Assembly (NCBI GenBank): GCA_051530055.1
Contig: CM121342.1
Coordinates: forward strand, 8,447,480 to 8,511,479
DNA length: 64,000 nt
Reading direction: 5' to 3'
DNA from: Neoechinorhynchus agilis
Taxonomy: Eukaryota > Animalia > Acanthocephala
Shown here piece after piece: positions 6,454-48,565 of this stretch (the first letter of the stretch is position 1; each line of letters opens with the position of its first letter). The position numbers and the translations under genes were made by a program. The notes beneath the pieces are model-generated. The model was not told where the DNA came from. It saw only the letters and a program-made list of their open reading frames with translations, and searched no databases.

Positions 6454-8330
6454 CGTTTACAGCAGTCACCGGAGTGCCAGTCTTCGTTGATTCTGGACCA
6501 CTGTTGAGGGCTTTTAATAAAGCCAATTTTTTCCAGTAATCTTCAGGGTTCGTAGCAGACCTGCCCCCAATCGCAGCCCGAAGGGTTCCAGAAGTCCAAA
6601 CCATCGCAGCTCTTCAAGGTATTAGCCTACTTTAGTGTTTCCTATTACGGAGAAGTGGGGTTTATTCTCGTGGTCAACAATTTTCACCTTCGCTCAACTT
6701 AACCCGATTAACCTCATTTTAAACAGAGAAATAGCCGATTAAATACAGAGCCTCGCGACTCTCCCGCTTGACATAAAAAGAGTTACGGATTTTCATTTGT
6801 TAAATAACGTCTAAAACCTAGTGATCGGATCGTAATTTTTAAGTATTTTTTCGTGGAAGATACCTACAAGAACAAAAACAGGAATATTGCCAGTTAAACG
6901 GATACGCGAATCCATATCGTCTAATGGCAGTGGACATGTTGGTTGTCCATATGAACGGACCGTTTCCGAGGTGCGCTCCTCTCGACGATATGTCCGATGT
7001 TGTACATTTGAATGATCGTTGCATTTTGGGAACCGGCAATAATTTCAATAATCATTAAAATAACATGCCGTTCGTGCATTTAAAAGGATATATTCAGCTT
7101 TCAGGGTTTTTCATACCAAGAGAATATTAGATCGGCTGCAATATTTGTAAGCCAGAGCAAAACATCGGATACATCAGACGCGACCAAGGAAACTGCGCGT
7201 AATCCTATTCGCTAGAGAGATTTTCTTCGAGCCTACACATTTTAACGGGAGAAATATTTCTATGTTAATATTGTTGCAGAGATGGCCGAGATGATTAAAA
7301 TGTATCGGGCAAAGATGTGTTTGAGCTTTTAAGAGATGGTGTTTAATACGAAGATTTTCAAATCGGACTGATTTTTTTGAAGAATCTTCCAATGAAGATA
7401 TACATTAAAAGTGTTTACAAATAAAATTATAAAAGCCACATGCAAGCAGTTAACAAATAATAATCAACATTAATTATTCTACAAATGATACAAGCTTAAA
7501 AGAGCAAAATGAGGCCATCAATGCGAAGTAGTTAAATTTTCGGAAAAAAAGCTGCGTTAGAAATAAAAACTTACGTCCATTGTCCACAAAATGGACATGG
7601 CAATGACATGGCAGAATAGAGCAAACGATTTTATGTACGACAACAAACTGATTAGATTGCGATTGTTCTTATATTGGCGGACTGGAACACATTGGTCCAA
7701 TTATTTTTAAACAAGGCAACTTCACCAACACCTCCTGTCGGCCGTATTCGAATTTCACGCCGACGGAATATCAGATCGGGATCGCTTGTGCGTACAGTTT
7801 CGCAAACTCTCAGCTAATAGAGCAAAGAAGCCGCATATTTTGAGCTTTTACAGTCAACAATCATAAATGTCCAGGTATAGTCACTTTTATTTACGAGTGC
7901 TAAAATATTCAAAAAAAGGAAGATAAAATTTTTTGAATTTGATAAGATTGTTGTTTTATTGTTCGGCTTTAATATTGTAACTTTATTAGTAGTCGCCTCT
8001 TTTCTAGCCGCGAGTCAAAAGCGACTCATTAAAACTCAAGTCACTTTCACCCTCTTTAAGGTAAATGGTGTTTGTTCTGACATTTAGGGTCGCTTTTCTT
8101 AATGAATATCAACGACATGATCATCATGAGTTGCTAGAAAGTGACATGAACGATTCAATTGGTATCAAAAAACAACATTTAAAGGATTGAGATCATATGG
8201 AAGCCTTCGCGTTCATTTATTTCTTTGTTTGAATAAGAATATTCCGTAAAAAGCGAAAAGGGCAGTATACTACTTCGCAAGTTCAATTTTCGCCCTAATA
8301 CCATTTTTATCCGAAGTTCAATCGAGAACT
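6454..8330 (+). repeat. Unknown repeat Y (about 1.9 kb, upstream flank of kinase copy 1)
   Basis: Direct copy at 11992-13880. Diverged copies at 28320-29390 (+), 33530-33830 (-) and 42525-43065 (+). Confidence 0.8.
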
Positions 8331-8407
8331 GGGAGATTCCGACAATTTGCGATTACTTTCATTAACCTTGTCTAGCGAGCAGTTGAAGCAATGGATCGCG
8401 AATGGAA

Positions 8408-8563
8408 GGCGGGCCAATATAAGCAGTCGCATATTTACCTGGTCATTGATTATGACACAAAATGTTTGCTAAAACACTGCTCAAGACGAAGACATACATG
8501 GAGTTGCATGAACTGCAATAATATTTTCAAAACAATATCATCAATAAACAAGTGAGTATAAAA
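8408..8563 (+). promoter_or_regulatory. Putative Pol II promoter of the kinase: GC-rich/CCAAT box and TATAAAA
   Basis: GGCGGGCCAAT at about 8408-8418 and TATAAAA at 8557-8563, about 100 bp before the ATG at 8662. TATAAAA is retained at 14101-14107, 40408-40414 and 48067-48073 (minus strand). Confidence 0.55.
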
Positions 8564-8661
8564 GCAGCTGAGATCAATGTTTGAAGACCGTGGGAATTTA
8601 AGGATCCACTTGCGAGCTCTTTGAATCGAGACTACAATTTAAAACTCATCTCTCTTCGCTC

Positions 8662-9726
8662 ATGGTTCAAATTACGATCGAGAATATCAAGCGAGCGGGA
8701 GTTCTCGGCCACGATAATAAAGTTTATATCTTGGGAGATTTAATTGGTGAAGGCAGTTTCGGGCAAGTTCTCAAATGCAAACAGAGGGGATCAAAAAGAA
8801 ACCTTGCAGTTAAAATATTAAAGAACGCCATTGGGGACTTCGACATGGATGATTGCGAAGTCAAGATGTTTAAGGCATTGAAAGAGGCCGATGGAGAACA
8901 AGCTAACATCGCAGTGCCCCTCGAAATGTTTAAGTACTGCGGACATCAATGTATTATTCTTGAACACTACGAAATGGACCTTAATGTGTTTGTAAACAAA
9001 TTTGGACCAATGCAAATGAATCACTTGTTATCCTTGGCATGTCAAATGTTGCAAGCATTAGCCAAGCTAAAAGAACTTAACATTGTTCATGGAGATCTAA
9101 AACCAGGAAATATTATGATGGTCAATTGTCTAGATAAACGTGAACAATTCAAGCTCATTGATTTTGGTCTTGCCGTACAACTACGAAACCAGGAGTCTCT
9201 CTATGGATACCTCCAAACTTCGTACTATCGAGCTCCGGAAATGATCGTGGGTTTACCCATCGCTAAATCAATCGACATGTGGAGCCTTGGTTGCACTATC
9301 GGGGAACTCGCGATTGGCAGGCCAATATTTCCAGGGAGTGACGATTATGAGACACTGGTCAGAATAACGATAGCAAGAGGTGTTATCCCGAATGCGGTCC
9401 TAAATAATGGAGTACGCACATTGCTATACTATAATAGGACAATCAACGGAGATGGATGGGTGCTGAAATCTCCATTGGAAAGGGGAATCTTTCCGTCTAA
9501 CAGCAGTGCATTGCATCCACCGATAACGTCCTTGGACAGCATTATTAGTCTAATGCCTCGAGATTATCGGACACAACAAGATACGCAAAACAAAAGCAAA
9601 TTAGGGGCAATGATGGATCGCATGCTTAAAATTTCCCCCGAGGATCGAGTTGATCCAACCGTCGCCCTTCAAACATACTTTTCAGAGAATGCTGACACTC
9701 AATTATGGGCTGGTAGGCCTTTATGA
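8662..9726 (+). CDS. Intronless HIPK/DYRK-like CMGC Ser/Thr kinase, kinase domain only (354 aa), intact
   Basis: GEGSFGQV, AVK, alphaC Glu (DCEVK), HGDLKPGN, LIDFG, YGYLQTSYYRAPEMIVGLP, IDMWSLGC, ELAIGRPIFPG. The HIPK-type signature is YLQSRYYRAPE-I-LGLP...IDMWSLGC. Confidence 0.9.
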   Translation: MVQITIENIKRAGVLGHDNKVYILGDLIGEGSFGQVLKCKQRGSKRNLAVKILKNAIGDFDMDDCEVKMFKALKEADGEQANIAVPLEMFKYCGHQCIILEHYEMDLNVFVNKFGPMQMNHLLSLACQMLQALAKLKELNIVHGDLKPGNIMMVNCLDKREQFKLIDFGLAVQLRNQESLYGYLQTSYYRAPEMIVGLPIAKSIDMWSLGCTIGELAIGRPIFPGSDDYETLVRITIARGVIPNAVLNNGVRTLLYYNRTINGDGWVLKSPLERGIFPSNSSALHPPITSLDSIISLMPRDYRTQQDTQNKSKLGAMMDRMLKISPEDRVDPTVALQTYFSENADTQLWAGRPL

Positions 9727-9952
9727 TTGTACAAGTCCATTGGTCAGAATTTCTACCATTTGTCGATGTTTCGGCATTTGTCGTTTCCAATAAATACTGC
9801 TTTCATTGATGTGAATTTAAGTAAAAGACTGCTATTAAATTTTTATGACGGATATTCATTTAAATGGGCAATTCTGTGCTATAATCAGTTCCCTTTTTAA
9901 GCTAAAACACTGTTATAAGTAAATGTCGATATGTGAGGTACCGGAGAATGTG

Positions 9953-10164
9953 GTTGCAGTTATTGTTTTTCTACGTCCGGTAAATAATTATTTATTAAAG
10001 ACGTTCCGAACTTCGTAGGGTTCATCAATAGTTCTAAAATACAAGATGATTAGTAATTATTTGCTTCCACTTGTATTTTAGAACTGATGATGAACCCGAC
10101 GAGGTTCGAAACGTCTTTAATAAATAATCATTTACAGGGTATAGACCAAAACAATAACTTCAAC
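9953..10164. repeat. Imperfect inverted repeat (about 93-95 bp arms, 24-nt loop)
   Basis: 9953-10045 is the reverse complement of 10070-10164, e.g. AGTTCTAAAATACAAG / CTTGTATTTTAGAACT and ATTATTTATTAAAGACGTT / AACGTCTTTAATAAATAAT. Confidence 0.9.
10075..10125 (+). ncRNA. Minimal type-I hammerhead ribozyme motif (Penelope pLTR type)
   Basis: CTGATGA-T (10084-10091), stem II GAACC/GGTTC around loop CGACGA, GAAA-C-GTC with a palindromic ACGT stem III, and a short stem I (GAA/TTT). Confidence 0.6.
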
Positions 10165-10819
10165 TATTATAAGTGATTTATGCGCACGTGAAAACGGAGT
10201 TGATGCGAAAAGCACAAGTGGCCTTTGTATTCTAAAAGGCTGAAGCCTAAATTTAAATATTTATTTTCATCTACTGTTATTTTCATGTTTTTAGAAACCG
10301 AACTGCCTCCCAAAAGCAATGAAAAATGAACTTTAAGAATATATAGGAACAAACGCAATTTTGTGCAGCTAATATGTTTTCTAATTAAAGTAATAGAACC
10401 TACGTATTGGGAAATGGGTTTTGTCGATATCTCAAACGCTAATAGAGATAATTCCTCATGATTTACAAATCTTAACACGTTTAGAATGCAATTTAGTTTG
10501 TCACAATCTTTTACGGATTAAAATTTCATATTGCTTAAAGTCGTGTAACGAATTTCAGTTAAGGACATGAGCAAAAATTGTATATTGTAATGCTTTTATT
10601 GTTTCGAACCGAATGACCTTGTTAATACTCAGCGAGCTGAAAAGTTAATTTATATTTTGCGGAATCACATGTAAAAAAAGGCATAAGTATCAGAAAATCT
10701 TTCAAAAACGAAATTGTAAGGTTTCCCATCTCTTTGCATTACAGCTTTTCAGTATTTATTTACACCCTTGTAAGAACATTTCTTATAAATAATATAAAAC
10801 GATACTACTTTTTAGGCTA

Positions 10820-11811
10820 TAAGCAATTGGTTTACTTATCCTCGTGAATTCATAATTCAGAGCGTTCGTTTGAGCCTCATAACAAGGTGGGCAAGATAAT
10901 TAAATTGACTAAAATTTTATTTTGACTCTAAAATTTTTTTTTGAAGTGAGGTTGAGAAATTGATATAAAAATGCTATAAACTGATGCGACAAACGGATCG
11001 TAGCAAATAAAATGCGAATGTAGAATAAATAAAGGTACTGATTTTACCTCCATAAAAACCGTGCACGAGGAATTTCTGAGATAAATAATAATTTCTTACA
11101 GTCAATCCGTCAATCAGGTGAAAAATAAATGTTATTACTATCGAAGGTTTGGAAGTTATTTGAACGCTTTCAAATTTGCATAATTTTGAAAAGTTAGGCT
11201 AAGTGCCCGCTGATTTTGAATAATCTTATGTCCCCTTAAATCGTAAATACTCCAAGCACACAAAGGAAAATATGGGCGCTTTTGTCGATATCCAATCCCT
11301 TCATCGGCGTGGGTGATCTTCATCTAAAATAAACCATCAGTGAGATGATATCAATCAACTTGGAATGCGGAATCGTCGTCTTTTTGCCGCCTCTTATTTG
11401 AGAATTCGTCTAGGTATTCATCTATGTAGTCCTGACCTGCCATTTTGTAGTCGCCGCTGATTCTGGGTAACCGTTGATGACTTTTATTAGTGGCCATTTT
11501 GCCTAGAAATCGTCAGGGTTCTAAAGGGCCTGCCCAATGGTAAGACCGAAATATGATTATGGTAAATTCCTAGTTTTCTTAGATTATATAATCCGACGAA
11601 AGCCTTCGAATGAAGAACACTTGCAACATTGAAAGAACGATCCAATCGTTTTAGGTTTACATAATTTTGGAAATTTCGCCGAAGAATTTAATGTGTACCG
11701 TTTGCATTGTTATTACTCGTCTTTGTTGGCTGTCGCAAATTCCAGGTTTCGTCAGGGCAATAACAATCAAATTCGGACTTGGAACCTCTGTTCCTTATGT
11801 TTCGACGATGC
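10820..11811 (+). repeat. About 1 kb segment duplicated directly at 50150-51141
   Basis: Long stretches of identity, e.g. CAGAGCGTTCGTTTGAGCCTCATA through GTTTCGACGATGC. Confidence 0.9.
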
Positions 11812-11991
11812 ACCTAGAGGGATCAGTTACTTTATTTTGCTTTCTATCACAAACGAACAGGAGATAGAAACTTTAAGCCCATGCGGCTGCCACTAAGATC
11901 TTGCCGATTGTTACTGAGATCCTATTGGTTCACGTTAGAAATCCACACAGTCCATGGCAAAACTGGAGTTTGAAAAGATGGTTAAGATTGA

Positions 11992-14900
11992 CGTTTACAG
12001 CAGTCACCGCAGTCCCAGTCTTCGTTGATTCTGGACCACTGTTGAGGGCTTTTAATAAAGCCAATTTTTTCCAGTAATCTTCAGGGTTCGTAGCAGACCT
12101 GCCCCCAATCGCAGCCCGAAGGGTTCCAGAAGTCCAAACCATCGCAGCTCTTCAAGGTATTAGCCTACTTTAGTGTTTCCTATTACGGAGAAGTGGGGTT
12201 TATTCTCGTGGTCAACAATTTTCACCTTCTCTCAACTTAACCCGATTAACCTCATTTTAAACAGAGAAATATCCAATTGAATACAGAGCCTCGCGACTCT
12301 CCGCTTGACATAAAAAGAGTTACGGATTTTCATTTGTTAAATAACATCTAAAACCTACTGATCGGGTCCTAATCTTTAAGTATTTCTTCGTGGAAGATAC
12401 CTTCAAGAACAAAAACAGGATTATTGCCAGTTAAACGGATACGCGAATCCATATCGTCTAATGGCAGTAGACATGTTGGTTGTCCATATGAACGGACCGT
12501 TTCCGAGGTGCGCTCCTCTCGACGATATGTCCGATGTTGTACATTTGAATGATCGTTGCATTTTGGGAACCGGCAATAATTTCAATAATCATTAAAATAA
12601 CATGCCGTTCGTGCATTTAAAAGGATATATTCAGCTTTCAGGGTTTTTAATACCAAGAGAATATTAGATCGGCTGCAGTATTTGTAAGCCAGAGCAAACC
12701 TACGGATACATCAGAAGCGACCAAGGAAACTGCGCGAAATCCTATTCGCTAGAGAGATTTTCTTCGAACCTACACATTCTAACGGGAGAAATATTTCTAT
12801 GTTAATATTGTTGCAGAGATGGCCGAAATGATTAAAATGTATCGGGCAAAGATGTGTTTGAGCTTTTATGAGATGGTGTTTAATACGAAGATTTTCAAAT
12901 CCGACTGATTTTTTTGAAGAATCTTACAATGAAGATATACATTAAAAGTGTTTACAAATAAATTGATAAAAGCCACATGCAAGCTGTTAACAAATAATAA
13001 TCAACATTAATTATTCTACAAATGATACAAGCTTAAAAGAGCAAAATGAGGCCATCAATGCGAAGTAGTTAAATTTGCGGAAAAACAAGCTGCGTTAGAA
13101 ATAAAAACTTACGTCCATTGTCCACAAAATGGACATGGCAATGTTGTAACAGAATAGAGCAAACGATTTTATGTACGACAACAAACTGATTAGATAGCGA
13201 TTGTTCTTATATTGGCGGACTGGAACACATTGGTCAAATTATTTTTAAACAAGGCAACTTCTTCGCTTCTTCCTGTCGGCCGTATTCGGATTTCACGCCG
13301 ACGGAATATCAGACCGGGATCGCTTGTGTGTACGGTTTCGCAAACTCTCAGCTAATAGAGCAAAGAAGCCGCATATTTTGAGCTTTTACAGTCAGCAATC
13401 ATAAATGTCCAGGTTTAGTAACTTTTATTTACGAGTCCTAAAATATCCAAAAAAAGGAAGATAAAATTTTTTGAATTTGATAAGATTGTTGTTTTATCGG
13501 TCGGCTTAAATATTGTAACTTTATTAGTGGTCGCCTCTTTTCTAGCCGCCAGTCAAAAGCGACTCATTAAAACTCGGTCTTTCGCCTCTTTGGGTAGTGG
13601 TGTTGTTATTGACATTTAGGGTCGCTTTTCTTAATGAATATCAACGACATGATCATCACTTGGTTAGCACAAGAGAAGGAAATTGACATGAACGATTCAA
13701 TTGGTATCAAAAAGCAACATTTGAAGTTGAGAATCATATGGAAGCCTTCGCGTTCATTTATTTCATTGTTTGAATAAGAATATTCCGTAAAAAGCGAAAA
13801 GGGCAGCATACTACTTCGCAGGTTAAATTTTCGCCCTAATACCATTTTTATCCGAAGTTCAATCGAGAACTGGGAGATTCCGACAATTCGCGATTACTTT
13901 CATTTACCTTATCGACCGAGCAGTTGAAGCAATGGATGTCGCGAATGGAAGGCGGGCCAATATAAGCAGTCGCATATTTACCTGGTCATTGATTATGACA
14001 CAAAATGTTTGCTAAAACACTGCTCAAGACGAGGACATCACATGGACGGCCATGAACTGCAATAATATTTCCAAAACAATGTCATCAATAAACAAGTGAG
14101 TATAAAAGCAGCTGAGATCAATGTTTGAAGACCGTGGGAATTTAAGGATCCACTTGCAGGCTGCGGATCCGATTTCACAATTTAAAACTCATCTCTCTTC
14201 GCTCATGGTTCAAATTCAAGATAGAGAATATCAACTGAAGAAGGCGGGAGTTCTCGGCCACGATAATAAGGTTTATATCTGGAGATTGTGGTGGTGAAGC
14301 AGTTTCGGGCAAGTTCTCAAATGCAAACAGAGGGGATCAAAAAGCAACCTTGCAGTTAAAATATTAAAGAACGCCATTGGGGACTTCGACATGGATGATT
14401 GCGAAGTCAAGATGTTTAAGGCATTGAAAGAGGCCGATGGAAAACAAGCTAACATCGCAGTGCCCCTCGAAATGTTTAAGTATTGCGGACATCAATGTAT
14501 TATTCTTGAACACTACGAAATGGACCTTAGTGTGTTTGTAAACAAATTTGGACCAATGCAAATGAATCACTTGTTATCCTTGGCATGTCAAATGTTGCAA
14601 GCATTAGCCAAGCTAAAAGAACTTAACATTGTTCATGGAGATCTCAAGCCAGGAAATATTATGATGGTCAATTGTCTAGATAAACGTGAACAATTCAAAC
14701 TCATTGATTTTGGTCTTGTCGTACAACTACGAAACCAGGAGTCTCTCTATGGATACCTCCAAACTTCGTACTATCGAGCTCCGGAAATGATCGTGGGTTT
14801 ACCCATCGCTAAATCAATCGACACCATGTGGAGCCTTGGTTGCAGTATCGGGGAACTCGCGATTGGCAGGCCAATATTTCCAGGGAAGTGACGATTATGA

Positions 14901-15066
14901 GACACTGGTCAGAATAACGATAGCAAGAGGTGTTATCGAATGCGGTCCTAAATAATGGAGTACGCACATTGCTATACTATAATAGGACAATCAACGGAGA
15001 TGGATGGGTGCTGAAATCTCCATTGGAAAGGGGAATCTTTCCGTCTAACAGCAGTGCATTGCATCT
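11992..15066 (+). repeat. Direct segmental duplicate of 6454-9517 (repeat Y + promoter + most of the kinase)
   Basis: Continuous by-eye alignment from CGTTTACAGCAGTCACC to GCAGTGCATTGCATC. Confidence 0.9.
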
Positions 15067-15376
15067 ACCGTTAGTGTCTTTGGCTCAAGAAGATCCGCAA
15101 AACACCAACAAGTTTTTGGCAATGCTGGGTCACCTGCTTGAACTTATCCCCGAGAGTCGAGGTGATCCCACGGTCGGCATCAAACAAAAATGGAGACGTC
15201 GCCCAAATTTCCGGATAACGAGCGGCGATCATTTTCGTATTTTCTACGAAGAAAAGAATCAGTATGATTTTGTGGAGGTGAGCATTAACAGAAAAGGTAA
15301 ATATTCGGAAACGTTGTTAGCAACAAAATATTTGGCGTTTAGGGCGAAAACGTTCCTTATTCTACAAAAACGATAA
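14205..15376 (+). pseudogene. HIPK-like kinase copy 2, frameshifted, with an alternative C-terminus
   Basis: ATG at 14205 followed by indels. ORF 14391-14891 is near-identical to copy 1 but carries a DTMWS insertion and a frameshift at FPGK. ORF 14930-15376 carries a different C-terminus. Confidence 0.9.
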
Positions 15377-15835
15377 TGTGTTCATCCAAATATTTATTCC
15401 GAAACATCAACATTTTGCATTTATCGAATACTTGAAACCACTCTTTTCAATCTAAACTTAGAAAAACATTGTATATAAAATGAAGTTTGTAAACGATTTA
15501 AGAGACAATCTATTACCCAATTCCCAAACAGTCGAAGTAAAAATTACTTCAATAATGTTTTTATTTCGCAGAAAAATTGAAGTAATTTATTTTCTTACAC
15601 TGACTTTGATTAATTTGCTGAATTTTCGAAACCCCAGCTGCATTCGAAAAAAATTGAGGATGTCTTAAAAATTTGAGAAATAATCAAAATTGTAAATTTC
15701 AAGAATACTTCGTCCTGTTAATTCGCCATTCTACACAGCACATATCTTTTATTTCTAAGAAACAAACCTAACAAGACGGAAAAATTGAAGAAACTTATTT
15801 GTTCCGATATTTCAGAAGTATTTCGATGAGGAAAA

Positions 15836-16200
15836 GCTTACTTGTAATTTGCTAAAGGAAAACCCATGACAAAGGCACAAGATTGTCCAGAAATATCGGA
15901 TTTTATAAATTGCTTCAATTTTTCTGCCATATCAAAACAGTAGAAATATTTCTCAGTGGTGGTTTTTGTGGCTTTGCTTCCATAAGGCACAAAAGTCACC
16001 CAAAAATTCATTTTATTTCCTTCATCAAAATGCGTGAAATTTAGAAGAGCGGTTTAGAATTTAGTGGCATATGGCGAAAAGTGAAAAATTCGATGGTCTA
16101 TTGAAACTTAACAAAAAATTCCTTCGTCGAATTTGAATCAAACGTTGATATAAGAAGCCTTTCAGAGATTTTTTATATGAACAAAAATAATTGTATTCAA
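15836..16200 (-). pseudogene. Decayed unknown exon X, copy downstream of and convergent with kinase copy 2
   Basis: Reverse complement of 46045-46394. The GTAAGC donor-like site is at 15841-15836. Confidence 0.45.
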
Positions 16201-17049
16201 TGTTTCGTCATCTACGTGGAATTTCTTCAGAATTGTTTACCCAAATACTAAAAAAATTCTGAAGGCCCACGTAGAGGAGCCCAATCTTGATCCGAACCAA
16301 ACCTTACAGATTCACTTTTTTGGTTTACAAGGCGGCGCGAAACTTATGTCAATTTGAGATTATCCATTACTTCGTGTCTTTATCCTAATAAATCCAGCTA
16401 GAGACTAAGATTTTCTAGAAATCTATAAGGGTGCTTTGCACAGATTTCCCATTTTCCATCTTTCGACGCCAACATAATATCTATCTTCGAGATATTGATT
16501 AAAATCATTCGCCGGAGTAATTTTCTTTTTCTTTGGTAAGGGGATGTCTGCTGATCAACAAAAAAGGGTTTACCTGTTATTTTAAAATAAAATGAAACAA
16601 ATTGACACTCCCTTTCCCACAATAAAAGACTAGTTAATTTCCTTTTTATTACCAATAGCATTAAGCAAAACAACATTTTACAAATAGCAGAGTAATACTG
16701 TCAAACATTCTTATTCTAATAATAGGATCCTACTAATTTTAGAAATAACACCATCGATTGGTAAACATATTATCCTCTACGAGGTCGCAAAAGATTTGAT
16801 ATCGCAGACATTAGTAAGAATGATCGACAGGGAGAGGCGAAGGTTAGTTGTGGACAATTGTTAAAGCTTTGTTATTTCAATTTTTGTCGCATATCAATAC
16901 AAATCGCTTCAACCGCTTTCTATGTTGCATTGAAACAACTCAAATTTGACCTGACACATTTTGATATTGCTAATTAACAAAACGTTTGCAAAGCAGCCTT
17001 CTAAATTTCTAAAAATTCTTAATCTCAAGTTGAATTTACGGGGATAAGG

Positions 17050-23702: not shown

Positions 23703-23711
23703 CAGCGCCTC

Positions 23712-29390: not shown

Positions 29391-29394
29391 TGTC

Positions 29395-33529: not shown

Positions 33530-33830
33530 AGATTCTTCAAAAAGATCCGTCCAATGTGAAAATCTTAGTTTTAAACACCATCTCTTGAAAGTTCAAACAC
33601 ATCCTTGCCCGATACATTGTCATCACTTCGGTTCGTTCTGCAAGTTTAAAATAGTGCAAATCGATTCTCGCTTTATGAGCAAATCCGTACGAATTCTCAA
33701 CGGCAACGACGATACACGTATTTTTCCATGGTAAACAAATACCAATATAAACAGAAATATTTCTCCTGGTAGAATGTGTAGGCTCGAAGGAAACCTGTTT
33801 TTATTCCACGGATGACAAATTAGCGAAGGG
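33530..33830 (-). repeat. Diverged inverted fragment of unknown repeat Y
   Basis: AAACACCATCTCTTGAAAGTT.AAACACATCCTTGCCCGATACATTGTCA and GAAATATTTCTCC..TAGAATGTGTAGG match 7230-7360 and 28330-28430 in reverse. Confidence 0.75.
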
Positions 33831-36822: not shown

Positions 36823-36845
36823 CAAAAAGGGCGATGTGCTTCTAC

Positions 36846-37480
36846 CTGGCATAAAGCCGCGCTGGGCTTCGCTGATTTGGATCTCCTCCCCAATCCTATT
36901 GTCAACCATTCGCTTCCACAATTTCATTGTGTGGGACATCAGCTTGATGCCACCGTAATTGCTACACCGCAGAATATTTCCTTTACCCTTAAAAATCGGC
37001 ACAAGTATGCTTCTTTGCCATGCTGGCGGAATCTTTTGCTCGGTATCTATCTTTCGAAAGTCTAGTAAGCAGTTTGACTCCGAAGGCGTCCAAACATTTC
37101 CATAACTAAATCGGGATGTTATCTGGACGGGCACTCTTACCAATCTTCATCTTTCTGATCTGCGTTGCGACGTCATCGTATGAATACGGTTTAGCCATAT
37201 TGATATTCGGCTGTACTTGTTCAATAGGCAATCTTTTATTCTCTCTGTTCAGGAGGGATCCGAAGTACTCCTTTCATCTGTTCAAAATATCGTTGTCTTG
37301 ATCAAGCATCCTACCCTCACTGTCGTTGATCATTTTGTGTCGTACGATGTCCCTAGACCTTTTGTCCCGGATTTTGGCCAACTTGAAGATAATATCCCTC
37401 CAATCATCTCTCTCCAGCTGGTCATATAGTTCTTGATCGGCTTCCCTCTTTGCTTTGGCGCATTCTCGGGATGCCCCGAG
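36846..37480 (-). mobile_element. RTE-clade LINE fragment
   Basis: WQRSILVPIFKGKGNILRCSNYGGIKLMSHTMKLWKRMVDNRI...QRGFMPGRST. Homologous to 4720-5350. Confidence 0.85.
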
Positions 37481-37854
37481 ACCTGATTTGGAAAAGCATC
37501 GCTTCCAATTTATTTAATGAGGTGGAAAGAGAGAGAGCAACGAAGGGGCAAAAGTGGACTATTTCTCGAATAACGCCTTTAGAATTACTTTCTTTACTTG
37601 TGGTTCTTCAATTCTATTGCTGAACATTTAAGCATTGCTGAGATTTTGGAAATAATTTTTCCCGAATTTTCGAATGCTCGCATAAATCTTGTAGAAAAAA
37701 AAACACATTTTAGTTTTATGAACCTTTGATTGTTAATGTGAATGTGGATTCAGTCATATCTTTATGTTGCGTTGAAAAGAATTAATTGTACCTTGGGTTA
37801 AATGGTAATAATAACATATTTTATTGTTTTATGAAGATTGGCCAGCCGGTAATT

Positions 37855-38034
37855 TATATCGATGTGTTTAATATTATGACACGGCTGTTAATTTTTGGGC
37901 ACACAGCCCACCGACCTGGTTCAGAGTAGTAATTCAATTACTCAAAGCACTGAACCATCCTACTCTGAACCAGGTCGGTGGGCTGTGTGTCCAAAAATTA
38001 ACAGCCGTGTCATAATAGGCCACACATCGATATA
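37855..38034. repeat. Foldback / MITE-like inverted repeat (58-bp near-perfect arms, about 75 bp including the imperfect outer part, 30-nt spacer)
   Basis: 37872-37929 versus 37960-38017 has a single mismatch. An outer TATATCGATGTGT / ACACATCGATATA pair extends the arms. Confidence 0.9.
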
Positions 38035-38249
38035 TTTTATTGTTACAAACAGAGAAACCATGTACCACTGGGTCCTCGCGAGCACTCTAGTTCTAATTTG
38101 TCAAACGAATGCGGTTGTTCATTTTGAAGAGGATTACGGGTTCGGTCGGGTGGGAATATCCGGTCGGTGGGTGCCTCTTCGTGTTAATATCCGGTCGGGG
38201 GATGTCCGTTCGGGTGGGAATTGGTGTTGATTTCCGATCTTTCCTCCGA

Positions 38250-39480
38250 ATCAATTCGCATTTGGAGGATTGGGCAGTAAAGAGGAAAAAGCGGAGGTAG
38301 AGATTTGTGCGAGGAACTGAAGGATGAAATTTTTTGGGACGACGAGTGTTGTAAGTATGAGTAAAAGGAGAAATTTGCGGTAGAAATTGAGACGGAAGAG
38401 AATGAAGGCACTTTGAGTGTTTTTGAAAGATTAGATAGAGGTGTTTTTCTAAAGGCACGAGTTCGGTGGCGAAGATTAGAGCGCATCTCTTGTGAAAGTG
38501 TTATGTTTTATAAAAAGGTTGGATATGCGTAGATGAGCGTTGGTAGGATTGCGAAGTTATACAAGTACTTAAGGTCTTTGGATAATAATCCAAGAAATTG
38601 GAGGCGTTTGAGAAGATAGAGTTTATTGGACCCTCTGTTCAACGAAATTGATATGTGCTTGTCCTACTTTAGATTTTCTTGAAAATGAAGACCAAGTATA
38701 CGAACAGAGGAGACACGATTGATAGGAAACAAAAAGCAGCTGATCGGAAGGGCTATTTGAGATTGAGGGGACGATTTCGAAGCACTTAGTTAAGGATAAG
38801 ATATTTCGAGGAGTAAAATGTTTGAACGTGAGAAATCTTGTTAGAAGTAATTGAGAGTGAGGGGAGAGCCGGCGCCTGCATAAAGATTGTGAGATCATCC
38901 ACATACAAGAAGTATTTACAATACGAAAAGGATGGAATAATATCGTTCAGAAAAATGTTGAAAAGAATGGGGGAGAGAAAAGCCCCTTGTGGGATTCCTT
39001 AGTTGATTGCTAAGGTGTTAGAGGCGATGATCTCTATTTCGGTAAATTGTAATTTATTGTTTAGAAAGGATTTCGACCATTTTATTTGCCAAGCGGCAAG
39101 ACCAAATTTAGAGTAAGTATCAAGGAGAAGATTGTGATCGAAGGAATCAAAAGCTTTATGAATGTCGATTTGGATGAGTCGAGAAATAAATAAAGGGTGT
39201 GAGTCGAGGTTATGAAGAGAATCGTAGATGCAAAGAAGGGCGTCCGTACAAGAAAAGCCGGGCCGGAAACCGAATTGAATGGGTGGAATTTTTTGATTAA
39301 AGATTTGGGTCTTCAATGAAATGAGGGGTTCGCTGTAGTAGTTCATCGATCTTGGAGATATCGAAGAACAATGTGACTGTGAGGATTCGAATGTCGCGGC
39401 AGCATTTGATTTAAGGTTAGGCGGAGATTGAAGCAATGACTTCCAAGACACATTCCACCTTTGATTAACAGAAATGGATT
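38250..39480 (-). mobile_element. CR1/L2-like LINE, 3' half (RT and C-terminus)
   Basis: QFGFRPGFSCTDAL, IDIHKAFDS, WSKSFLNNKLQF, GIPQG..LSPILFNIFLND, and the C-terminal HTYNTRR motif. Confidence 0.88.
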
Positions 39481-39789
39481 TGATATATTGCTAAATAACG
39501 CGACGTTGGAGGCCTAAAGCTGATGCCTTGTCTAAAATCCACTTCTCATGGGCACGCTTTTATATCATATTTAATTGGTTCTATAATGTTAGATTTTTTA
39601 GGATAAAATATATTACAAAAATGATCAAGGCATCTTTATTGATATCCAGTTCAGTCTTCAGTCCAATAGTATAGAGATTTCTAGTGAATTTTAAAAAATC
39701 AACAATATTTTTCAAAGATAAAGGATTAATTAAAATAACATTTTTGGTATTCATTCATTCTATTTTTTCCACCTTGGCAGCTTAGTTTA

Positions 39790-40125
39790 CCCTCGCAGTA
39801 AGCAACATTCCTTACTCTCTCGAAATCGCTGGAGGTGCAGCCAGTGCAGCGGAAGGGAGGAAGGTACGAAAATATAGAGAATTAGCAAGGGCCCACTATG
39901 TTGTCCCCTTCGGAGTTCGGCACTCACTCTGCTCCAGGATTTCTCGAAGAAATTGAGAGAAACGACCGGCGACGAACTAGCGGGTGTATTCCTGGGACAA
40001 AATATCTCGCTTGCAGTACAACGAGGCAATGCTGCTGGCGTGATAGCGACAGCCGACGAAGCAGAGAAGCTAAGATTTTGCGGACGGTGGTGATTGCATA
40101 AGAACTAACAAAAAAACATTCTTTT
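39790..40125 (+). mobile_element. CRE-clade element 3' end, abutting the promoter of kinase copy 3
   Basis: Near-identical to 53045-53395, with an internal deletion (ACCCTCGCAGTAAGCAACATTCC ... TTTTGCGGACGGTGGTGATTG..AGAACTAAC). Confidence 0.85.
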
Positions 40126-40512
40126 TGGGAAAACATTTTTCGTCCTAATTCAATTTTTATCCGAAGTTCAAGCGATAACTGGGAGATTCCGACAATTCGC
40201 GATTACTTTCATTTACCTTATCGACCGAGCAGTTGAAGCATTGGATCGCGAATGGAAGGTGGGCCAATATAAGCATTCGTCTATTTACCTGGTCAATGAT
40301 TATGACACAAAACGTTGGCCAAAACACTGCTCAAGACTAGGACATCACATGGACTGGCATGAACTGCAATAATATTTTCAAAACAATGTCATCAATAAAC
40401 AAGTGGGTATAAAAGCTGCTGAGATCAATGTTTGAAGACTGTGTGAATTTAAGGATCCACTTGCGAGCTATTTGAATCGAGACTACAATTTTAAACTCAT
40501 CTCTCTTCGTTC

Positions 40513-41656
40513 ATGGTTCAAATTGCGATCGAGAATATCAAGCGAGCGGGAGTTCTCGGACACGATAATAAAGTTTATATCTTGGGAGATTTAATTTGTG
40601 AAAGCAGTTTCGGGGAAGTTCTCAAATGAAAACAGAGGGGACCAAAAAGCAACCTTGCAGTTAAAATATTAAAGAACGCCATTGGGGACTTCGACATGGA
40701 TGATTGCGAATTCACGATGTTTAATGCCATAAAAGAGGTTGATGGAGAACGAGCTAATATCGCAGTGTCCCTCGAAATGTTTAAGTAATGCAGTCATCCG
40801 TGCATGATTCTTGAACACTACGAAATGGTAAACACATTTGGACCAACGCCAAACAATCGGTTGTTTTCCTTGGTATAACCAAATGTTGCAAGCATTGGAG
40901 AAGCTAAAAGATCTTCATGGAGATCTCAAGCTAGGAAATATTATGATGGCCAATTGTCTAGGTAAACCTGAACAATTCAAACTCATTGATTTTGGTCTTG
41001 CCGTACAACTACGAAACCAAGAGTCTCTCTATGGATACCTCCAAACTTCGTACTATCGAGCTCCGGAAATGATCGTGGGTTTACCCATCGCTAAATCAAT
41101 CGACATGAAGAGCCTTGGTTGCACTATCGGGGAACTCGCGGTTGGGAGGCCAATGTTTCCAGGGAGTGATGATTATGAAACACTGGTTAGAATAACGATA
41201 ACAAGAGGTGTTATCCCGAATGCGGTCCTTGATAATGGAGTACGGACATTGCTATACTATAATAGGACAATCAACGGAGATGGATGGGTGCTGAAATCTC
41301 CATTGGAAAGGGGAATCTTTCCGCCGAACAACAGTGCGCTGCATCTACCGTTAGTGTCGTTGGCTCAAGAAGATCCGCAAAACACCAACAAGTTTTTGGC
41401 AATGCTGGGTCACCTGCTTGAACTTATCCCCGAGAGTCGAGGTGATCCCACGGTCGGCATCAAACAAAAATGGAGACGTCGCTCAAATTTCCGGATAACG
41501 AGCGGCGATCATTTTCGTATTTTCTACGAAGAAAAGAATCAGAATGATTTTGTGGAGGTGAGCATTAACGGAAAAGGTAAATATTCGGAAACGTTGTTAG
41601 CAACAAAATATTTGGTTTTTAGGGCGAAAACGTTCCTTATCCTACAAAAACGATAA
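40513..41656 (+). pseudogene. HIPK-like kinase copy 3
   Basis: ATG at 40513, in-frame TGA at 40627-40629 and TAA at 40786-40788, deletions, HGDLKLGN, DMKSLG, and the alternative C-terminus. Confidence 0.9.
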
Positions 41657-43169
41657 GGTGTTCATCCAAATATTTATTCCGAAACATCAACATTTTGTTT
41701 TTATCGAATACTTGAAACCATTCTTTTCAATCTAAACTTAGAAAAACATTGTATCAAAAATGAAGTTTGTTAACGATTTAAGAGACAATCTATTACCCAA
41801 TTCCCAAACAGTCGAAGTAAAAATTATTTCAATAATGTTTTTATTTCGCAGAAAAATTGAAGTAATTTATTTTCTTACACTGACTTTGATTAATGTGCCG
41901 AATTTTCGAAACTCCAGCTGCATTCAAAAAATTCGAGGCTGTCTTAAAAATTTGAGATATAATCAAAATTGTAAATTTCAAGAATACTTCGTTGCTGCGA
42001 ATTCGCCATTCAATACAACACATATTTTTTATTTCTAAGAACCAAACCTAACAAGGCGGAAAAATTGACGGCGCAAAAATTACCCGAAAATTCGTTTTGT
42101 TTCCTTCATGAAAATGCGTGAAATTTAGAAGGGCGATTATGAATTTATCAGCATATCGCAAAAAGTGAAAAATTCAATGGTCTATTGAAACTTAACAAAA
42201 ATTCTCCTGTGTCAAATTTGAATCAAACGCTCATATAAGAAGCTTTACAGAGATTTTTTATATGAATAAAAGTAATTTTATTCATTGTTTCGTCATCTAC
42301 GCGGAATTTCAACCAAAACTCACAGATTCACTTTTTGGTTTAGAAGGCAGCGGGAAACTACTGATGGATTTTGAGATCATTTGTCAATTGGAGATTATCC
42401 ATTAGTTCGTGTCTTTATCCTGATAAATTCAGCTAGAGATTAAGAATTTCTAGAAATCTAGACGGGTGCTTTGCACTGATTTCCCATTCTCCATCTTTGG
42501 ACGCCAACATAACAGGGAATGAAGACCTTAAGCCCCTGCGGCTGCCACTAAGATCTGATCGCATGTTACCGAGATCTTATTGGTTTGCCTTAGAAATCCA
42601 CACCGTCCATGGCAAAACTAGGATTTGAAATGATGATTAAGAATGACGATTGCAGCAGTCGGCGGAGTTCCAGTCTCCGTTGATTCTGGATCACCGTCGA
42701 GGATTTGTAATAAAGCAACAGACCTGTCCCCAATCGTAACCGCGAAGAATTCCTGAGGTCCAAACCATCACAGCTTTGCAAGGTATTATTAGCCTACTTC
42801 AGTGTTTCCTATTACGGAGAAGCGGGGTCTGATTTCTGATAATATGGTTCTCGTGGTCCACAATTTCACCTTCGCTCAATTTAATCGGCTATTTCTCCGA
42901 GCGGCGAACCTCGCGATTCGCCGCTCGACATAAAAAGAGTTACGGATTTTCATTTGTTAAATAAGGTCTAAAACCTATTAATCGGATCGTAATTTTTAAG
43001 TATTTCTTCGTGGAAGATGCCGTAGAGAACAAAGGCAAGATTATTGCCAGTTAAACGCATACGCGAGAGTGCGAAGGCACTACCTAAACGTGAAGCGAAA
43101 GTATATGGAGGGGTAAAGGTTGACACGTTAAGAAGCTGTGAAGCGAATGTTTAGCGAAATGATAAATCG

Positions 43170-44110
43170 AGAAAATTAGAAGTGACAGTGGCCAATCACA
43201 CCACGATATGTTCATTTGGATTGCCGTTTCCGGGAGCCTTCAAAATCAAAGTACCGTCTCAGGTTTATGCCAGGAGAATGGATTTGGAGAAAGAAGCTGG
43301 AAGCATTTGGGAGGATTTGGCAAATTTATCCGAGGGAGATACGGTTGCAATGAAGGATATTAAGGTGAAATTACGCTTATCGCGTGAAGCTAACCCGATA
43401 CGATGTCCAGCGAGACGAATACCCTATGTATTGCAAGACCTGGGTAAACGAGAGATTCAAAGATTGGTGGAACGGGAAATTTTGGAAAGCGTGAATATAA
43501 CAGAGAAGTCGAATGGTTGACCCCAATCGTCTTAGTAAGGAAGGATGCTAGGAACATTTAGCCAACATGCGAAAAGTGTTACAGAGATTGCAGGAAACTT
43601 GCGTCAACGTGTGGAGATTCTTGGGAAATGTTCTTGAAGATGGGGTTTGCAGAGCAGATGAGAAGGAAGTCAAAGATTTGGTTTATGCTAGCTCGCCGGT
43701 GGACAAGCAAGAACTAAAACATTTCTTGGAGCAGTGAGTTTTCATGAAAATTTATTCCACAGTTGCAATCCAAGTGTGCTGATCTCTACAAACTATTAAG
43801 AAAGGATCAAAGATGGATCCGGAACCAGAGCTTAAAGAGTTGTTTCAATGCAACATAGAAAGCGGTTGAAGCGATTTGTATTGATATGCGACGTAAGCGA
43901 GAAGGGAGTCCTGCGATGTTCGCACCCAGAAAATTAAGCATGGCCGAAAGTAATTATTCAACGATAGGAAAAGAGGCCTCGCAATTTTCTTTGGAGCCAA
44001 ACGATTCTATCAATACTTTTATGGCCGATTTTTTGAACTAGAGATTGATCACAAACCATCATCATACGTTTTAGTGGTTACAAATGCGATCTCAGCCGAG
44101 ATGTCCACTG
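43170..44110 (+). mobile_element. Ty3/Gypsy pol remnant (RT start to RNase H-like domain)
   Basis: PIRCPARRIPYVLQDLGKREIQRLVEREIL, KRFVLICDVSEKGV and KRFYQYFYGRFFELEIDHKP. Confidence 0.85.
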
Positions 44111-45272: not shown

Positions 45273-46044
45273 TCATCTGAATTGGAAGTATAAAAGTTCA
45301 AAAGCATTTTGGAAACGGTATATTAACATAGGTATAGAAAACGACAAAAATTTAAATAACAAAGCTTTATCGAATCTCCCTGTCGGTCATTCTTACTAAT
45401 GTCTACGATATCAAATCTTTTGCGACCTCGTAGAGGATAATATGCTTACCAATCGATGGTGTTATTTCTAAAATTAGTAGGATCCTATTATTAGAATAAG
45501 AATATTTGACAGTATTACTCTGCTATTTGTAAAATGTTGTTTTGCTTAATGCTATTGGTAATAAAAAGGAAATTAACTAGTCTTTTATTGCGGGAAAGGG
45601 AGTGTCAATTTGTTTCATTTTATTTTAAAATAACAGGTAAACTCTTTTTTGTTGATCAGCAGACATCCCCTTACCAAAGAAAAAGAAAATTACTCCGGCG
45701 AATGATTTTAATCAATATCTCGAAGATAGATATTATGTTGGCGTCGAAAGATGGAGAATGGGAAATCTGTGCAAAGCACCCTTATAGATTTCTAGAAAAT
45801 CTTAGTCTCTAGCTGGATTTATTAGGATAAAGACACGAAGTAATGGATAATCTCAAATTGACATATGATCTCAAAATGCCTCAGTAGTTTCGCGCCGCCT
45901 TGTAAACCAAAAAAGTGAATCTGTAAGGTTTGGTTCGGATCAAGATTGGGCTCCTCTACGTGGGCCTTCAGAATTTTTTTAGTATTTGGGTAAACAATTC
46001 TGAAGAAATTCCACGTAGATGACGAAACATTGAATACAATTATT

Positions 46045-46394
46045 TTTGTTCATATAAAAAATCTCTGAAAGGCTTCTTATATCAACGTTTGATTCAAATT
46101 CGACGAAGGAATTTTTTGTTAAGTTTCAATAGACCATCGAATTTTTCACTTTTCGCCATATGCCAATAAATTCTAAACCGCTCTTCTAAATTTCACGCAT
46201 TTTGATGAAGGAAATAAAATGAATTTTTGGGTGACTTTTGTGCCTTATGGAAGCAAAGCCACAAAAACCACCATTGAGAAATATTTCTACTGTTTTGATA
46301 TGGCAGAAAAATTGAAGCAATTTATAAGATCCGATATTTCTGGACAATCTTATGCTTTTGTCATGGGTTTTCCTTTAGAAAATTACAAGTAAGC
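46045..46394 (+). pseudogene. Decayed unknown exon X, convergent with kinase copy 4
   Basis: SIDHRIFHFSPYANKF*TALLNFTHFDEGNKMNFWVTFVPYGSKATKTTIEKYFYCFDMAEKLKQFIRSDISGQSYAFVMGFPLENYK, followed by GTAAGC at 46389. Confidence 0.45.
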
Positions 46395-46824
46395 TTTTCC
46401 TCATCGAAAAACTTCTGAAATATCGGAACAAATAAGTTTCTTCAATTTTTCCGCCTTGTTAAGTTTTGCTCTTAGAAATAAAAGATATGTGTTGTGTAGA
46501 ATGGCGAATTCACAGAACGAAGTATTCTTGAAATTTACAATTTTGATTATTTCTCAAATTTTTAAGACATGCTCAATTTTTTTCGAATGCAGCTGAGTCA
46601 GTGTAAGAAAATAAATTACTTCAATTTTTCTGCGAAATAAAAACATTATTAAAATAATTTTTACTTCGACTGTTTTGGAATTGGGTAATAGATTGTCTCT
46701 TAAATCGTTAACAAACTTCATTTTTGATACAATGTTTTTCTGAGTTTAGATTGAAAAGAGTGGCTTCAAGTATTCGATAAAAACAAAATGTTGATGTTTC
46801 GGAATAAATATTTGGATGAACACA

Positions 46825-47968
46825 TTATCGTTTTTGTAGGATAAGGAATGTTTTTGCCCTAAACACCAAATATTTTGTTGCTAACAACGTTTCCGAATAT
46901 TTACCTTTTCCGTTAATGCTCACCTCCACAAAATCATACTGATTCTTTTCTTCGTAGAAAATACGAAAATGATCGCCGCTCGTTATCCGTAAACTTGAGC
47001 GACGTCTCCATTTTTGTTTGATGCCGACCGTGGGATCAACTCGACCCTCGGGGATAAGTTCAAGCAGGTGACCCAACATTGCCAAAAACTTGTTGGTGTT
47101 TTGCGGATCTTCTTGAGCCAAAGACACTAACGGTAGATGCAGCGCACTGTTGCTCGGCGGAAAGATTCCCCTTTCCAATGGAGATTTCAGCACCCATCCA
47201 TCTCCGTTGGTTGTCCTATTATAGTATAGCAATGTCCGTACTCCATTATCAAGGACCGCATTCGGGATAACACCTCTTGTTATCGTTATTCTAACCAGTG
47301 TTTCATAATCATCATTCCCTGGAAACATTGGCCTCCCAACCGCGAGTTCCCCGATAGTGCAACCAAGGCTCTTCATGTCGATTGATTTAGCGATGGGTAA
47401 ACTCACGATCATTTCCGGAGCTCGATAGTACGAAGTTTGGAGGTATCCATAAAGAGACTCTTGGTTTCGAAGTTGTACTTCAAGACCAAAATCAATGAGT
47501 TTGAATTGTTCAGGTTTACCTAGACAATTGACCATCATAATATTTCCTAGCTTGAGATCTCCATGAAGGTCTTTTAGCTTCTCTAATGCTTGCAACATTT
47601 GGTTATACCAAGGAAAACAACCGATTTTTTGGCGTTGGTCCAAATGTGTTTACCATTTCGTAGTGTTCAAGAATCATGCACGGATGACTGCATTACTTAA
47701 ACATTTCGAGGGACACTGCGATATTAGCTCGTTCTCCATCAACCTCTTTTATGGCATTAAACATCGTGAATTCGCAATCATACATGTCGAAGTCCCCAAT
47801 GGCGTTCTTCAATATTTTAACTGCAAGGTTGCTTTTTGATCCCCTCTGTTTGCATTTGAGGACTTCCCCGAAACTGTCCTCGCCAATTAAGTCTCCCAGG
47901 ATATAAACTTTATTATCGTGGCTAAGAACTCCCGCTCGCTTGATATTCTCGATCGCAATTTGAACCAT
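46825..47968 (-). pseudogene. HIPK-like kinase copy 4 (inverted partner of copy 3)
   Basis: ORFs 47693-47968 and 46825-47643. Shares the codon-92 TAA, the deletions, KLGN and DMKS with copy 3. Confidence 0.9.
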
Positions 47969-48384
47969 GAACGAAGAGAGATGAGTTTAAAATTGTAGTC
48001 TCGATTCAAATAGCTCGCAAGTGGATCCTTAAATTCACACAGTCTTCAAACATTGATCTCAGCAGCTTTTATACCCACTTGTTTATTGATGACATTGTTT
48101 TGAAAATATTATTGCAGTTCATGCCAGTCCATGTGATGTCCTAGTCTTGAGCAGTGTTTTGGCCAACGTTTTGTGTCATAATCATTGACCAGGTAAATAG
48201 ACGGATGCTTATATTGGCCCACCTTCCATTCGCGATCCAATGCTTCAACTGCTCGGTCGATAAGGTAAATGAAAGTAATCGCGAATTGTCTGAATCTCCC
48301 AATTATCGTTATAACTCTGGAAAAAAACTGAATTAGGACGAAAAATGTTTTCCCAAAAAGAATGTTTTTTTGTTAGTTCTTATA

Positions 48385-48565
48385 CAATCACCACCGTCCG
48401 CAAAATCTTAGCTTCTCTCCTTCCTCGGTTGTTGCTATCACGCTAGCAGCATTGCCTCGTTGTACTGCGAGCGAGATATTTTGTCCCAGGAATACACCCG
48501 CTAGTGCGTCGCCGATCGTTTCTCTCAATTTCTTAGAGAGATCCAGGAGCAGAGTGAGTGTCCGT
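48385..48565 (-). mobile_element. CRE-clade 3' end abutting the promoter of kinase copy 4
   Basis: KKLRETIGDALAGVFLGQNISLAVQRGNAASVI. Mirror image of 39940-40125. Confidence 0.85.

Follow-up and report, generated by a model that had tools for sequence, protein, structure and literature searches.

Four copies of a kinase gene in the window

The window analysed here is a stretch of 64,000 nucleotides from the genome of Neoechinorhynchus agilis, an acanthocephalan (thorny-headed worm) that parasitizes mullets, and lies at about 8.447-8.511 Mb of CM121342.1, a chromosome-scale scaffold of 16.38 Mb in assembly GCA_051530055.1. Within it, a single-exon gene for a protein kinase related to the HIPK family is present in four copies, the start codons of which were found exactly where a preliminary description of this DNA had placed them, at 8662, 14205 and 40513 on the forward strand and at 47968 on the reverse strand. 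Comparison of the window with itself (BLASTN) revealed that long stretches of flanking DNA are duplicated together with the gene. Positions 6454-9535, around copy 1, are 94.6% identical to positions 11992-15083, around copy 2, over 3.1 kb, which is far beyond chance, and positions 13828-16889 match 48344-45342 on the reverse strand at 90.7%, likewise over 3.1 kb. Copy 3 is tied to the second of these blocks (13828-15788 against 40137-42068, 90.7%) and, most closely, to copy 4, with 39921-42068 and 48560-46442 being 95% identical and including an inverted repeat of 1965 nt that aligns without a gap at 97%. The coordinates of all features are collected in Table 1.

The four copies were also said to have a common upstream region with CCAAT and TATAAAA motifs, and such a region was found in each of them, about 378 bp long and 89-94% identical, with TATAAAA located 104-105 bp 5' of every ATG. 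Among the young copies that cover the respective site, the TATA motif is kept in eight of eight and the CCAAT motif in six of six, and by these motif matches the region is a putative promoter. Only copy 1 preserves an uninterrupted open reading frame (ORF), as proposed beforehand: when frameshifts and stops were counted in the frame of copy 1, each of copies 2-4 was found to carry three to seven frameshifting indels and one or two stops. In the protein searches, copy 1 entered as one ORF, and each broken copy was represented by its individual ORF pieces. Pfam recognized the Pkinase domain in copy 1 (E = 6e-43) and in pieces of copy 3 (40838-41653, E = 4e-20) and copy 4 (46828-47643, E = 5e-19). 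The annotated model for copy 1 (P0001, at about 8,456,489 on CM121342.1) begins at an internal methionine and comprises only 238 aa, compared to 354 aa for the complete ORF.

Table 1. Kinase copies, flanks and retrotransposon remnants of the window, followed by the kinase loci found elsewhere (RT, reverse transcriptase). Positions given without a contig name are those of the window.
Feature	Position	Strand	Details
Copy 1, upstream region, promoter-like, common to all young copies	8284-8661	+	CCAAT 8414, TATAAAA 8557; 89-94% identical in copies 2-4, L002, L011
Copy 1, intact single-exon ORF, 354 aa, kinase-domain-only, HIPK-class CMGC	8662-9726	+	stop 9724-9726
Copy 1, type 1 (ancestral) 3' flank	9727-10693	+	80-87% to L001, L003, L006
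Copy 1, repeat Y, mosaic of transposon-like fragments	6454-8283	+	94.6% identical to 11992-13827
Copy 2, repeat Y	11992-13827	+	self-BLASTN
Copy 2, upstream region	13828-14204	+	93.9% identical to 8284-8661
Copy 2, broken kinase gene	14205-15186	+	7 frameshifting and 2 in-frame indels, 1 stop
X, non-coding transposon-derived 3' flank of X-type copies	15187-16941	+	shared with copy 4, L002, L005, L010, L011
Copy 3, left arm of palindrome	39921-42512	+	5' flank 39921-40133, upstream 40134-40512, kinase 40513-41486, then partial X
Copy 3, broken kinase gene	40513-41486	+	3 frameshifting and 4 in-frame indels, 2 stops
Young repeat copy terminating the X region of copy 3	42070-43578	-	43578-42601 matches 3098-4075 at 99.4%; 42509-42070 matches 23934-24373 at 97.7%
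Copy 4, right arm of palindrome	45342-48560	-	X 45342-46986, kinase 46987-47968, upstream 47969-48347, 5' flank 48348-48560
Copy 4, broken kinase gene	46987-47968	-	4 frameshifting and 4 in-frame indels, 1 stop
RT ORF, retrotransposon remnant, between the two copy pairs	19755-21296	-	RVT_1 E = 1e-26
Further RT piece	25644-26627	+	Pfam
Further RT piece	38999-39451	-	Pfam
Weak AP-endonuclease-like piece	1915-2337	-	under Pfam's own cut-off
Weak AP-endonuclease-like piece	58444-59013	-	under Pfam's own cut-off
L001	CM121341.1, 2.56 Mb		palindrome, arms up to 4.4 kb at 96-98%; one kinase copy per arm
L006	CM121341.1, 2.60 Mb		94-97% identical duplicate of the L001 palindrome module; arms 95-96%
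L003	CM121341.1, 14.03 Mb		kinase fragment
L002	CM121342.1, 7.18 Mb		copy with internal 543-bp segment about 10 times in tandem (8647-14059 of the locus), then X
L005	CM121342.1, 8.06 Mb		5'-truncated copy abutting 172-bp satellite, and inverted fragment
L011	CM121342.1, 11.53 Mb		copy split by about 2 kb including a repeat also at window 51970-53313
L010	unplaced 6.6-kb contig		one copy

A kinase-domain-only protein and the ordinary HIPK of the worm

Sequence comparison of the copy 1 protein with solved structures ranked HIPK2 and HIPK3 first (E about 1e-52 to 1e-51), followed by DYRK1A/B (about 1e-43 to 3e-43), and in the alignment with HIPK2 the glycine loop, the catalytic lysine, the catalytic loop, DFG and the activation loop, tyrosine included, are all covered. 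When 42 kinases were aligned, copy 1 showed the conserved residue in each of the 16 invariant columns, among them the catalytic Lys, Glu, HxD, Asn and DFG. An AlphaFold2 model of the protein (predicted local distance difference test, 89.6; predicted template modelling score, 0.90) was used for a fold search, in which human HIPK3 and HIPK2 again ranked first (template modelling score, TM-score, 0.84-0.86; 31-33% identity). The long C-terminal regulatory region of HIPKs, with its interaction, PEST and tyrosine/histidine-rich parts, is missing from copy 1. These features predict an active Ser/Thr kinase devoid of the HIPK regulatory tail.

The ordinary HIPK of N. agilis is P0164 (ACOME3_009359), a protein of 935 aa encoded among ordinary genes on the third chromosome-scale scaffold, CM121343.1. 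Copy 1 aligns only to residues 145-498 of this protein, and over this whole kinase domain the two are 34% identical. P0164 thus being the ordinary HIPK ortholog, that identity was rejected for copy 1, in agreement with the preliminary description. The latter had further contrasted a kinase-only single-exon gene with multi-exon HIPK genes with a long tail; the kinase-only part of this contrast stands, but the intron part does not, as residues 4-935 of P0164 are encoded by one uninterrupted exon (L007:3632-6430). Because the canonical HIPK coding region of this worm is itself one exon, the absence of introns from copy 1 is uninformative with respect to retroposition. A recent retrocopy of P0164 was rejected in view of the 34% identity, the upstream sequence carried by the copies and the nearly intronless parent. 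The copies share about 380 bp of upstream sequence and kilobases of flank, and no poly(A) is present at their ends, all of which differs from processed retrogenes and upholds the earlier proposal of amplification at the DNA level.

Since a claim of lineage restriction rests on missing relatives, we performed an exhaustive search of 1.84 billion representative proteins. None of these exceeded 50% identity to copy 1 outside N. agilis, the only matches above this value being N. agilis fragments. The best single-domain matches were animal HIPKs, at 35-44% identity, and the highest summed scores were obtained by teleost proteins with two to five matched stretches and by one beetle protein (26-37% identity). 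No protein named HIPK4 occurred among the matches with names shown or looked up. The closest relative outside N. agilis was P0230, a single-exon kinase of 391 aa that is 42-44% identical to copy 1 and lies on a 5-kb contig of GCA_052426985.1 (L008:475-1650). Judged by its sequence, the copy 1 gene is a very divergent, lineage-specific member of the HIPK class (CMGC, DYRK-related).

An endogenous viral segment had been suggested as another source of the gene, and a viral source would fit the presence of protein kinase genes in large DNA viruses and the small size and single exon of the gene. However, the best viral structural matches (BFVD) are only 14-24% identical to copy 1, with TM-scores of at most 0.76, well apart from the 31-44% reached by human HIPK2/3 and other animal HIPKs, and the worm's own HIPK is likewise nearly intronless. 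Neither a viral gene nor any viral hallmark domain was found among the 26 ORFs and ORF pieces of the window. Acquisition of the kinase from a large DNA virus is accordingly regarded as extremely improbable.

Copies at other loci and the ends of the duplicated blocks

Annotated relatives of copy 1 led to seven loci beyond the window (L001-L003, L005, L006, L010 and L011; L004 and L009 correspond to the window itself), and the amplification therefore extends beyond this locus, in keeping with the preliminary description. Across the eight loci we counted 13 gene-length copies, distributed over two of the three chromosome-scale scaffolds and one unplaced contig, and copy 1 is the sole intact one, the other 12 being broken. 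Tail-to-tail inverted pairs occur at four places, namely copies 3/4, L001, L006 and, with its inverted fragment, L005. The family is thus a multi-copy gene of high identity residing in direct and inverted repeats, the arrangement by which ampliconic or palindromic families are recognized. Longer blocks are shared as well: more than 5 kb of the window beside copy 3 (34660-39788) is collinear with positions 14351-21291 of L003, on another chromosome, at 83-93% identity. The N. agilis papers PMC12690905 (with one supplement) and PMC12256650 make no mention of this family, and the former contains no HIPK or DYRK terms.

Two of these loci show peculiarities of their own. At L002, the 543-bp units are arranged head to tail, are 95-97% identical and span from about 1/7 to 3/5 of the coding sequence, such that part of a gene now forms a satellite-like array, which the public annotation divides into several short "kinase" genes. 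At L005, the 172-bp satellite occupies positions 1-9496 (55.5 units, 93% identity), extends beyond the start of the locus and stops one or two bases before the kinase copy.

The duplicated segment had been described as a fixed unit composed of a repeat (Y), the kinase and a downstream exon (X), a description that did not survive comparison of the copy ends. The common core of the family begins near 8284, a 5' limit found in six copies. Beyond it, copies 1, 2, L003 and L011 run into Y-like sequence, and copies 3, 4 and L002 switch to other sequence, which in copies 3 and 4 is a repeat also present at 53045-53413. At the 3' side, copy 1, L001, L003 and L006 have the full reading frame followed by the ancestral flank (type 1), and copies 2, 3, 4, L002, L005, L010 and L011 diverge shortly before the end of the reading frame and continue into X (type X). 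The two tails are unrelated, and the X-type tail ends raggedly at three different points, one of which, near 16917-16941, is common to three copies. The type 1 flank of copy 1 contains a foldback insertion resembling a miniature inverted-repeat transposable element at about 9921-10188 (inverted repeat 9953-10164, main arms of 76 nt at 87%), which is missing from the same flank in L001, L003 and L006.

Both flanks proved to be composed of repeats. Y is indeed shared by copies 1 and 2, but it is a mosaic of repeat fragments rather than a discrete repeat. Pieces of it recur at 3610-4029, 42647-43066, 28330-29391 and 33437-33631, and also, in other orders and orientations, in L002, L005 and L011. 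On its left side, the block common to copies 1 and 2 itself terminates within a repeat fragment, which extends further left in copy 2 (11856-12446). As for X, its presence downstream of copies 2 and 4 was verified, but copy 3 has it only up to 42512 and across a gap of about 200 bp, and its interpretation as an exon was rejected. It holds no ORF longer than 92 aa past the kinase reading frame and no coding signal, and it consists largely of old copies of transposon-derived repeats present elsewhere in the window (matches at 4112-4467, 24133-24489, 42070-42512 and 49668-50149).

Two junctions offer a view of how such ends may arise. The X region of copy 3 is, from 42070 to 42512, 97-98% identical to young repeats at 23934-24373 and 4071-4351, as opposed to 81-91% identical to the X of copies 2 and 4, and it runs on into a young copy of this kind, an indication that recombination took place through a transposon. 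Copy 2 is of hybrid composition, with 98% identity to copy 1 over 14328-15077 and 97-100% identity to X-type copies thereafter; the exchanged tract begins and ends within homologous sequence, as gene conversion or unequal recombination would predict. We infer that the junctions of the family would have been made by homologous recombination or gene conversion, among repeat fragments as well as among kinase copies, with copy 2 combining two lineages.

Capture of the kinase and its promoter by a Helitron, a Pack-type DNA element or a large composite element, another suggestion of the preliminary description, would agree with the occurrence of copies on two chromosomes and an unplaced contig, with the recurrent 5' and 3' limits and with flanks built from transposon pieces. 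A mobile element with precise ends would nevertheless be hard to reconcile with two kinds of 5' junction, three 3' end points and two unrelated 3' tails. The unit limits are not paired by terminal inverted repeats, long terminal repeats (LTRs) or a terminal hairpin, and alignments of the copy ends across the eight loci displayed ragged ends without base-exact shared termini and without a visible target-site duplication or duplicated flank. Furthermore, the 26 ORFs and ORF pieces of the window include no transposase, Rep/helicase or integrase domain, only RT and weak endonuclease matches, and collinear blocks of more than 5 kb travel with the kinase, as in segmental duplication. Transposition of the kinase as cargo is hence highly improbable.

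The surroundings of the copies are rich in transposable elements, as had been reported: repeats internal to the window make up 51% of it, a fraction that rises to 73% when the comparison includes 100 kb of sequence from five other kinase loci. Pfam identified three RT ORFs, one window RT has a weak match to the solved RNA-directed DNA polymerase 8c8j, and together with the weak AP-endonuclease-like pieces these matches suggest remnants of non-LTR retrotransposons; 21 of the 26 ORFs and ORF pieces scanned were blank in Pfam. The window also comprises three tandem arrays, with units of 117, 192 and 182 bp, two of which are non-coding satellites. Neither the 192-bp nor the 182-bp satellite was found at the other kinase loci, and a single centromeric satellite common to these loci was rejected since the satellites differ at every locus. 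Three kinase loci lie at 44-52% along their 16.4-Mb chromosome, and the setting of the family may be heterochromatic or pericentromeric.

Further features of the window were noted in passing. The two satellites (about 192 bp, 53651-56786; about 182 bp, 61521-64000 and continuing past the window end) are AT-rich and mutually unrelated. The 117-bp array forms ORF 35204-36304 (annotated gene 35204-36822), made up of 39-aa repeats rich in Pro, Gln, Gly and Tyr and blank in Pfam. A repeat family at 3098-5216, 23934-25238 and 42070-43578 is 97-99% identical, which suggests that it was active or underwent conversion recently; its ORFs contain no recognized protein domain, and the RT-like ORF at 25644-26627 follows one of its copies. 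At the left edge of the window lie tRNA-Gly(GCC) (97-164, forward strand) and tRNA-Asp(GTC) (2562-2633, reverse strand), the only two matches of the window in Rfam.

Decay of the copies and origin of the family

We consider it likely that the family goes back to a HIPK-like gene, restricted to this lineage and to the kinase domain, that was multiplied in heterochromatin-like DNA through segmental duplication, homologous recombination and gene conversion, a process that would mostly have copied dead genes. The founder would have been a single-exon unit of about 1.45 kb, consisting of about 380 bp of its own upstream sequence and the 354-aa ORF, and it would have spread through retrotransposon- and satellite-rich DNA by segmental duplication at the DNA level, not by transposition, retroposition or viral integration. 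The duplications would have taken the form of a neighbouring direct pair, tail-to-tail palindromes, interchromosomal blocks and tandem repetition of a fragment from within the gene. A type 1 lineage (copy 1, L001, L003 and L006) would have kept the full frame and the ancestral 3' flank, while in a type X lineage (copies 3, 4, L002, L005, L010 and L011) the end of the reading frame would have been swapped for transposon-derived sequence. Copy 1 would be the sole functional gene seen, and the others pseudogenes carried along passively.

The decay of the copies is consistent with this origin by segmental duplication. One frameshift is common to copies 3, 4 and L005, which indicates that this lineage was dead before it was copied to other loci and argues for passive amplification; at least these three copies would thus have been broken before copying went on. 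Measured against copy 1, the ratio of non-synonymous to synonymous divergence (dN/dS) is 0.35 for the old L001/L006 subfamily (dS about 0.36) and increases in younger pairs, to 0.49-0.65 with X-type copies and 0.88 with copy 2, a gradient that fits a founder under constraint whose duplicates later decayed. On this gradient, copy 1 may have been under selection. Six private frameshifts were found in copy 2 and none in copy 1 (probability about 0.016 if indels fell evenly on both lineages), which is modest evidence that the frame of copy 1 has been maintained.

Several observations weigh against this account. Substitutions between copies 1 and 2 are spread over the three codon positions without bias (14/17/15), so that constraint since the split of these copies is not demonstrated. 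The changes specific to copy 1 comprise six non-synonymous and two synonymous ones, from a polarization with outgroups that left 29 of 48 sites ambiguous. Copy 1 could be a very young pseudogene, the frame of which survived by chance. The branch of copy 1 in a simple neighbour-joining tree without bootstrap is long and attaches at the base of the HIPK group, separate from both P0164 and the expanded teleost families. The number of copies was established solely at loci bearing annotated family members. Finally, some indels in near-identical copies may be errors, given a hybrid R9.4 assembly from pooled worms.

The last of these points leads to the possibility that one or two real genes were multiplied or corrupted during assembly. 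The assembly combines R9.4 reads of Oxford Nanopore Technologies with Illumina reads from about 50 pooled worms and was made with MaSuRCA and annotated with BRAKER (PMC12690905). One copy sits on an unplaced contig of 6.6 kb, and the small indels of copy 2 are numerous in relation to its low substitution divergence. Against such an artefact, the copies are 5-20% apart and have different flanks at each locus, far above the level of haplotypes or errors, and their relatedness is orderly, with subfamilies, a shared frameshift and graded dS. The frameshifts are not concentrated in homopolymers either; none of the small frameshifts of copy 2 lies in a homopolymer of four or more bases, which argues against simple nanopore error. 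An assembly artefact is for these reasons highly improbable.

A selfish family engaged in germline conflict, also put forward in the preliminary description, would by analogy combine an intact kinase acting in the germline with inverted pseudogene pairs serving as sources of silencing hairpin small RNAs or PIWI-interacting RNAs (piRNAs). One intact copy facing many dead ones, the recurrence of tail-to-tail pairs at four places and the repeat-rich surroundings would all suit such a conflict. Moreover, N. agilis retains piRNAs, for which the degree of genomic clustering has been measured (PMC12256650), and Smok/Tcr provides the precedent of a multi-copy kinase system (PMC6394906). However, L001 and L006 are duplicates of one another, so that the palindromes are not all independent; palindromes also form passively in repeat-rich DNA; and the most prolific lineage was already broken, which requires no selection for dosage. 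A germline conflict is in our view unlikely. Its more explicit version, with copy 1 as a selfish germline gene and the palindromes of dead copies (3/4, L001, L006 and L005) transcribed into silencing hairpins or piRNA precursors in the manner of Stellate/Su(Ste) or of Dox with its hairpin suppressors, would have to be called quite unlikely.

Passive segmental duplication remains the preferred explanation. The genome of N. agilis is compact, with 46.2 Mb of which about a third is coding (PMC12690905). In a compact genome of this size, 13 or more copies in satellite- and retrotransposon-rich blocks represent a conspicuous part of the repeat landscape. The family also matters for annotation, as the public gene set breaks it into many short "hypothetical proteins". 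Expression of copy 1 in the gonad would make the family a candidate case of genetic conflict in a phylum that has received little study; otherwise, the family would exemplify ordinary gene-family decay in heterochromatin.

Compared to HIPK1-4, the kinase domain of copy 1 is nearest to HIPK2/3 in sequence and fold, and its activation-loop tyrosine aligns with that of HIPK2. It differs from them in having 354 aa without an N-terminal extension or long C-terminal region, in its low identity (31-44%), in being multi-copy and in its long branch outside the canonical cluster. Teleosts (icefish, killifish, sea bream, wrasse, cichlid) have independent multi-copy HIPK-class kinase domains as well. These families (P0121-P0128) comprise many gene models with repeated kinase domains, including one icefish cluster of 17 members, and look like a parallel, independent development; a literature search on teleost HIPK expansions found nothing. 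They are only 26-35% identical to copy 1 and cluster apart in the tree, and transfer from the fish host, of which there is no sign, was rejected.

In architecture alone, the family resembles Stellate/Su(Ste), Smok/Tcr and the palindromes of sex chromosomes, with a multi-copy gene derived from a signalling protein, many pseudogenes, inverted repeats and a repeat-rich environment. To our knowledge, no arms race of the Stellate/Su(Ste) or Dox kind has been described in Acanthocephala. Core duplicons and pericentromeric blocks differ from the present family, which resides in a tiny genome of 46 Mb, has nearly all of its copies dead and gives no sign of positive selection or fusion transcripts. They are alike in having a core, here the kinase and its upstream region, set in differing flanks, together with repeats at the junctions, gene conversion and interchromosomal blocks. 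Taken together, the copies provide a dated series (dS 0.05-0.38) that leads from the birth of a gene, through palindromic duplication and gene conversion, to a gene fragment in the form of a satellite-like array.

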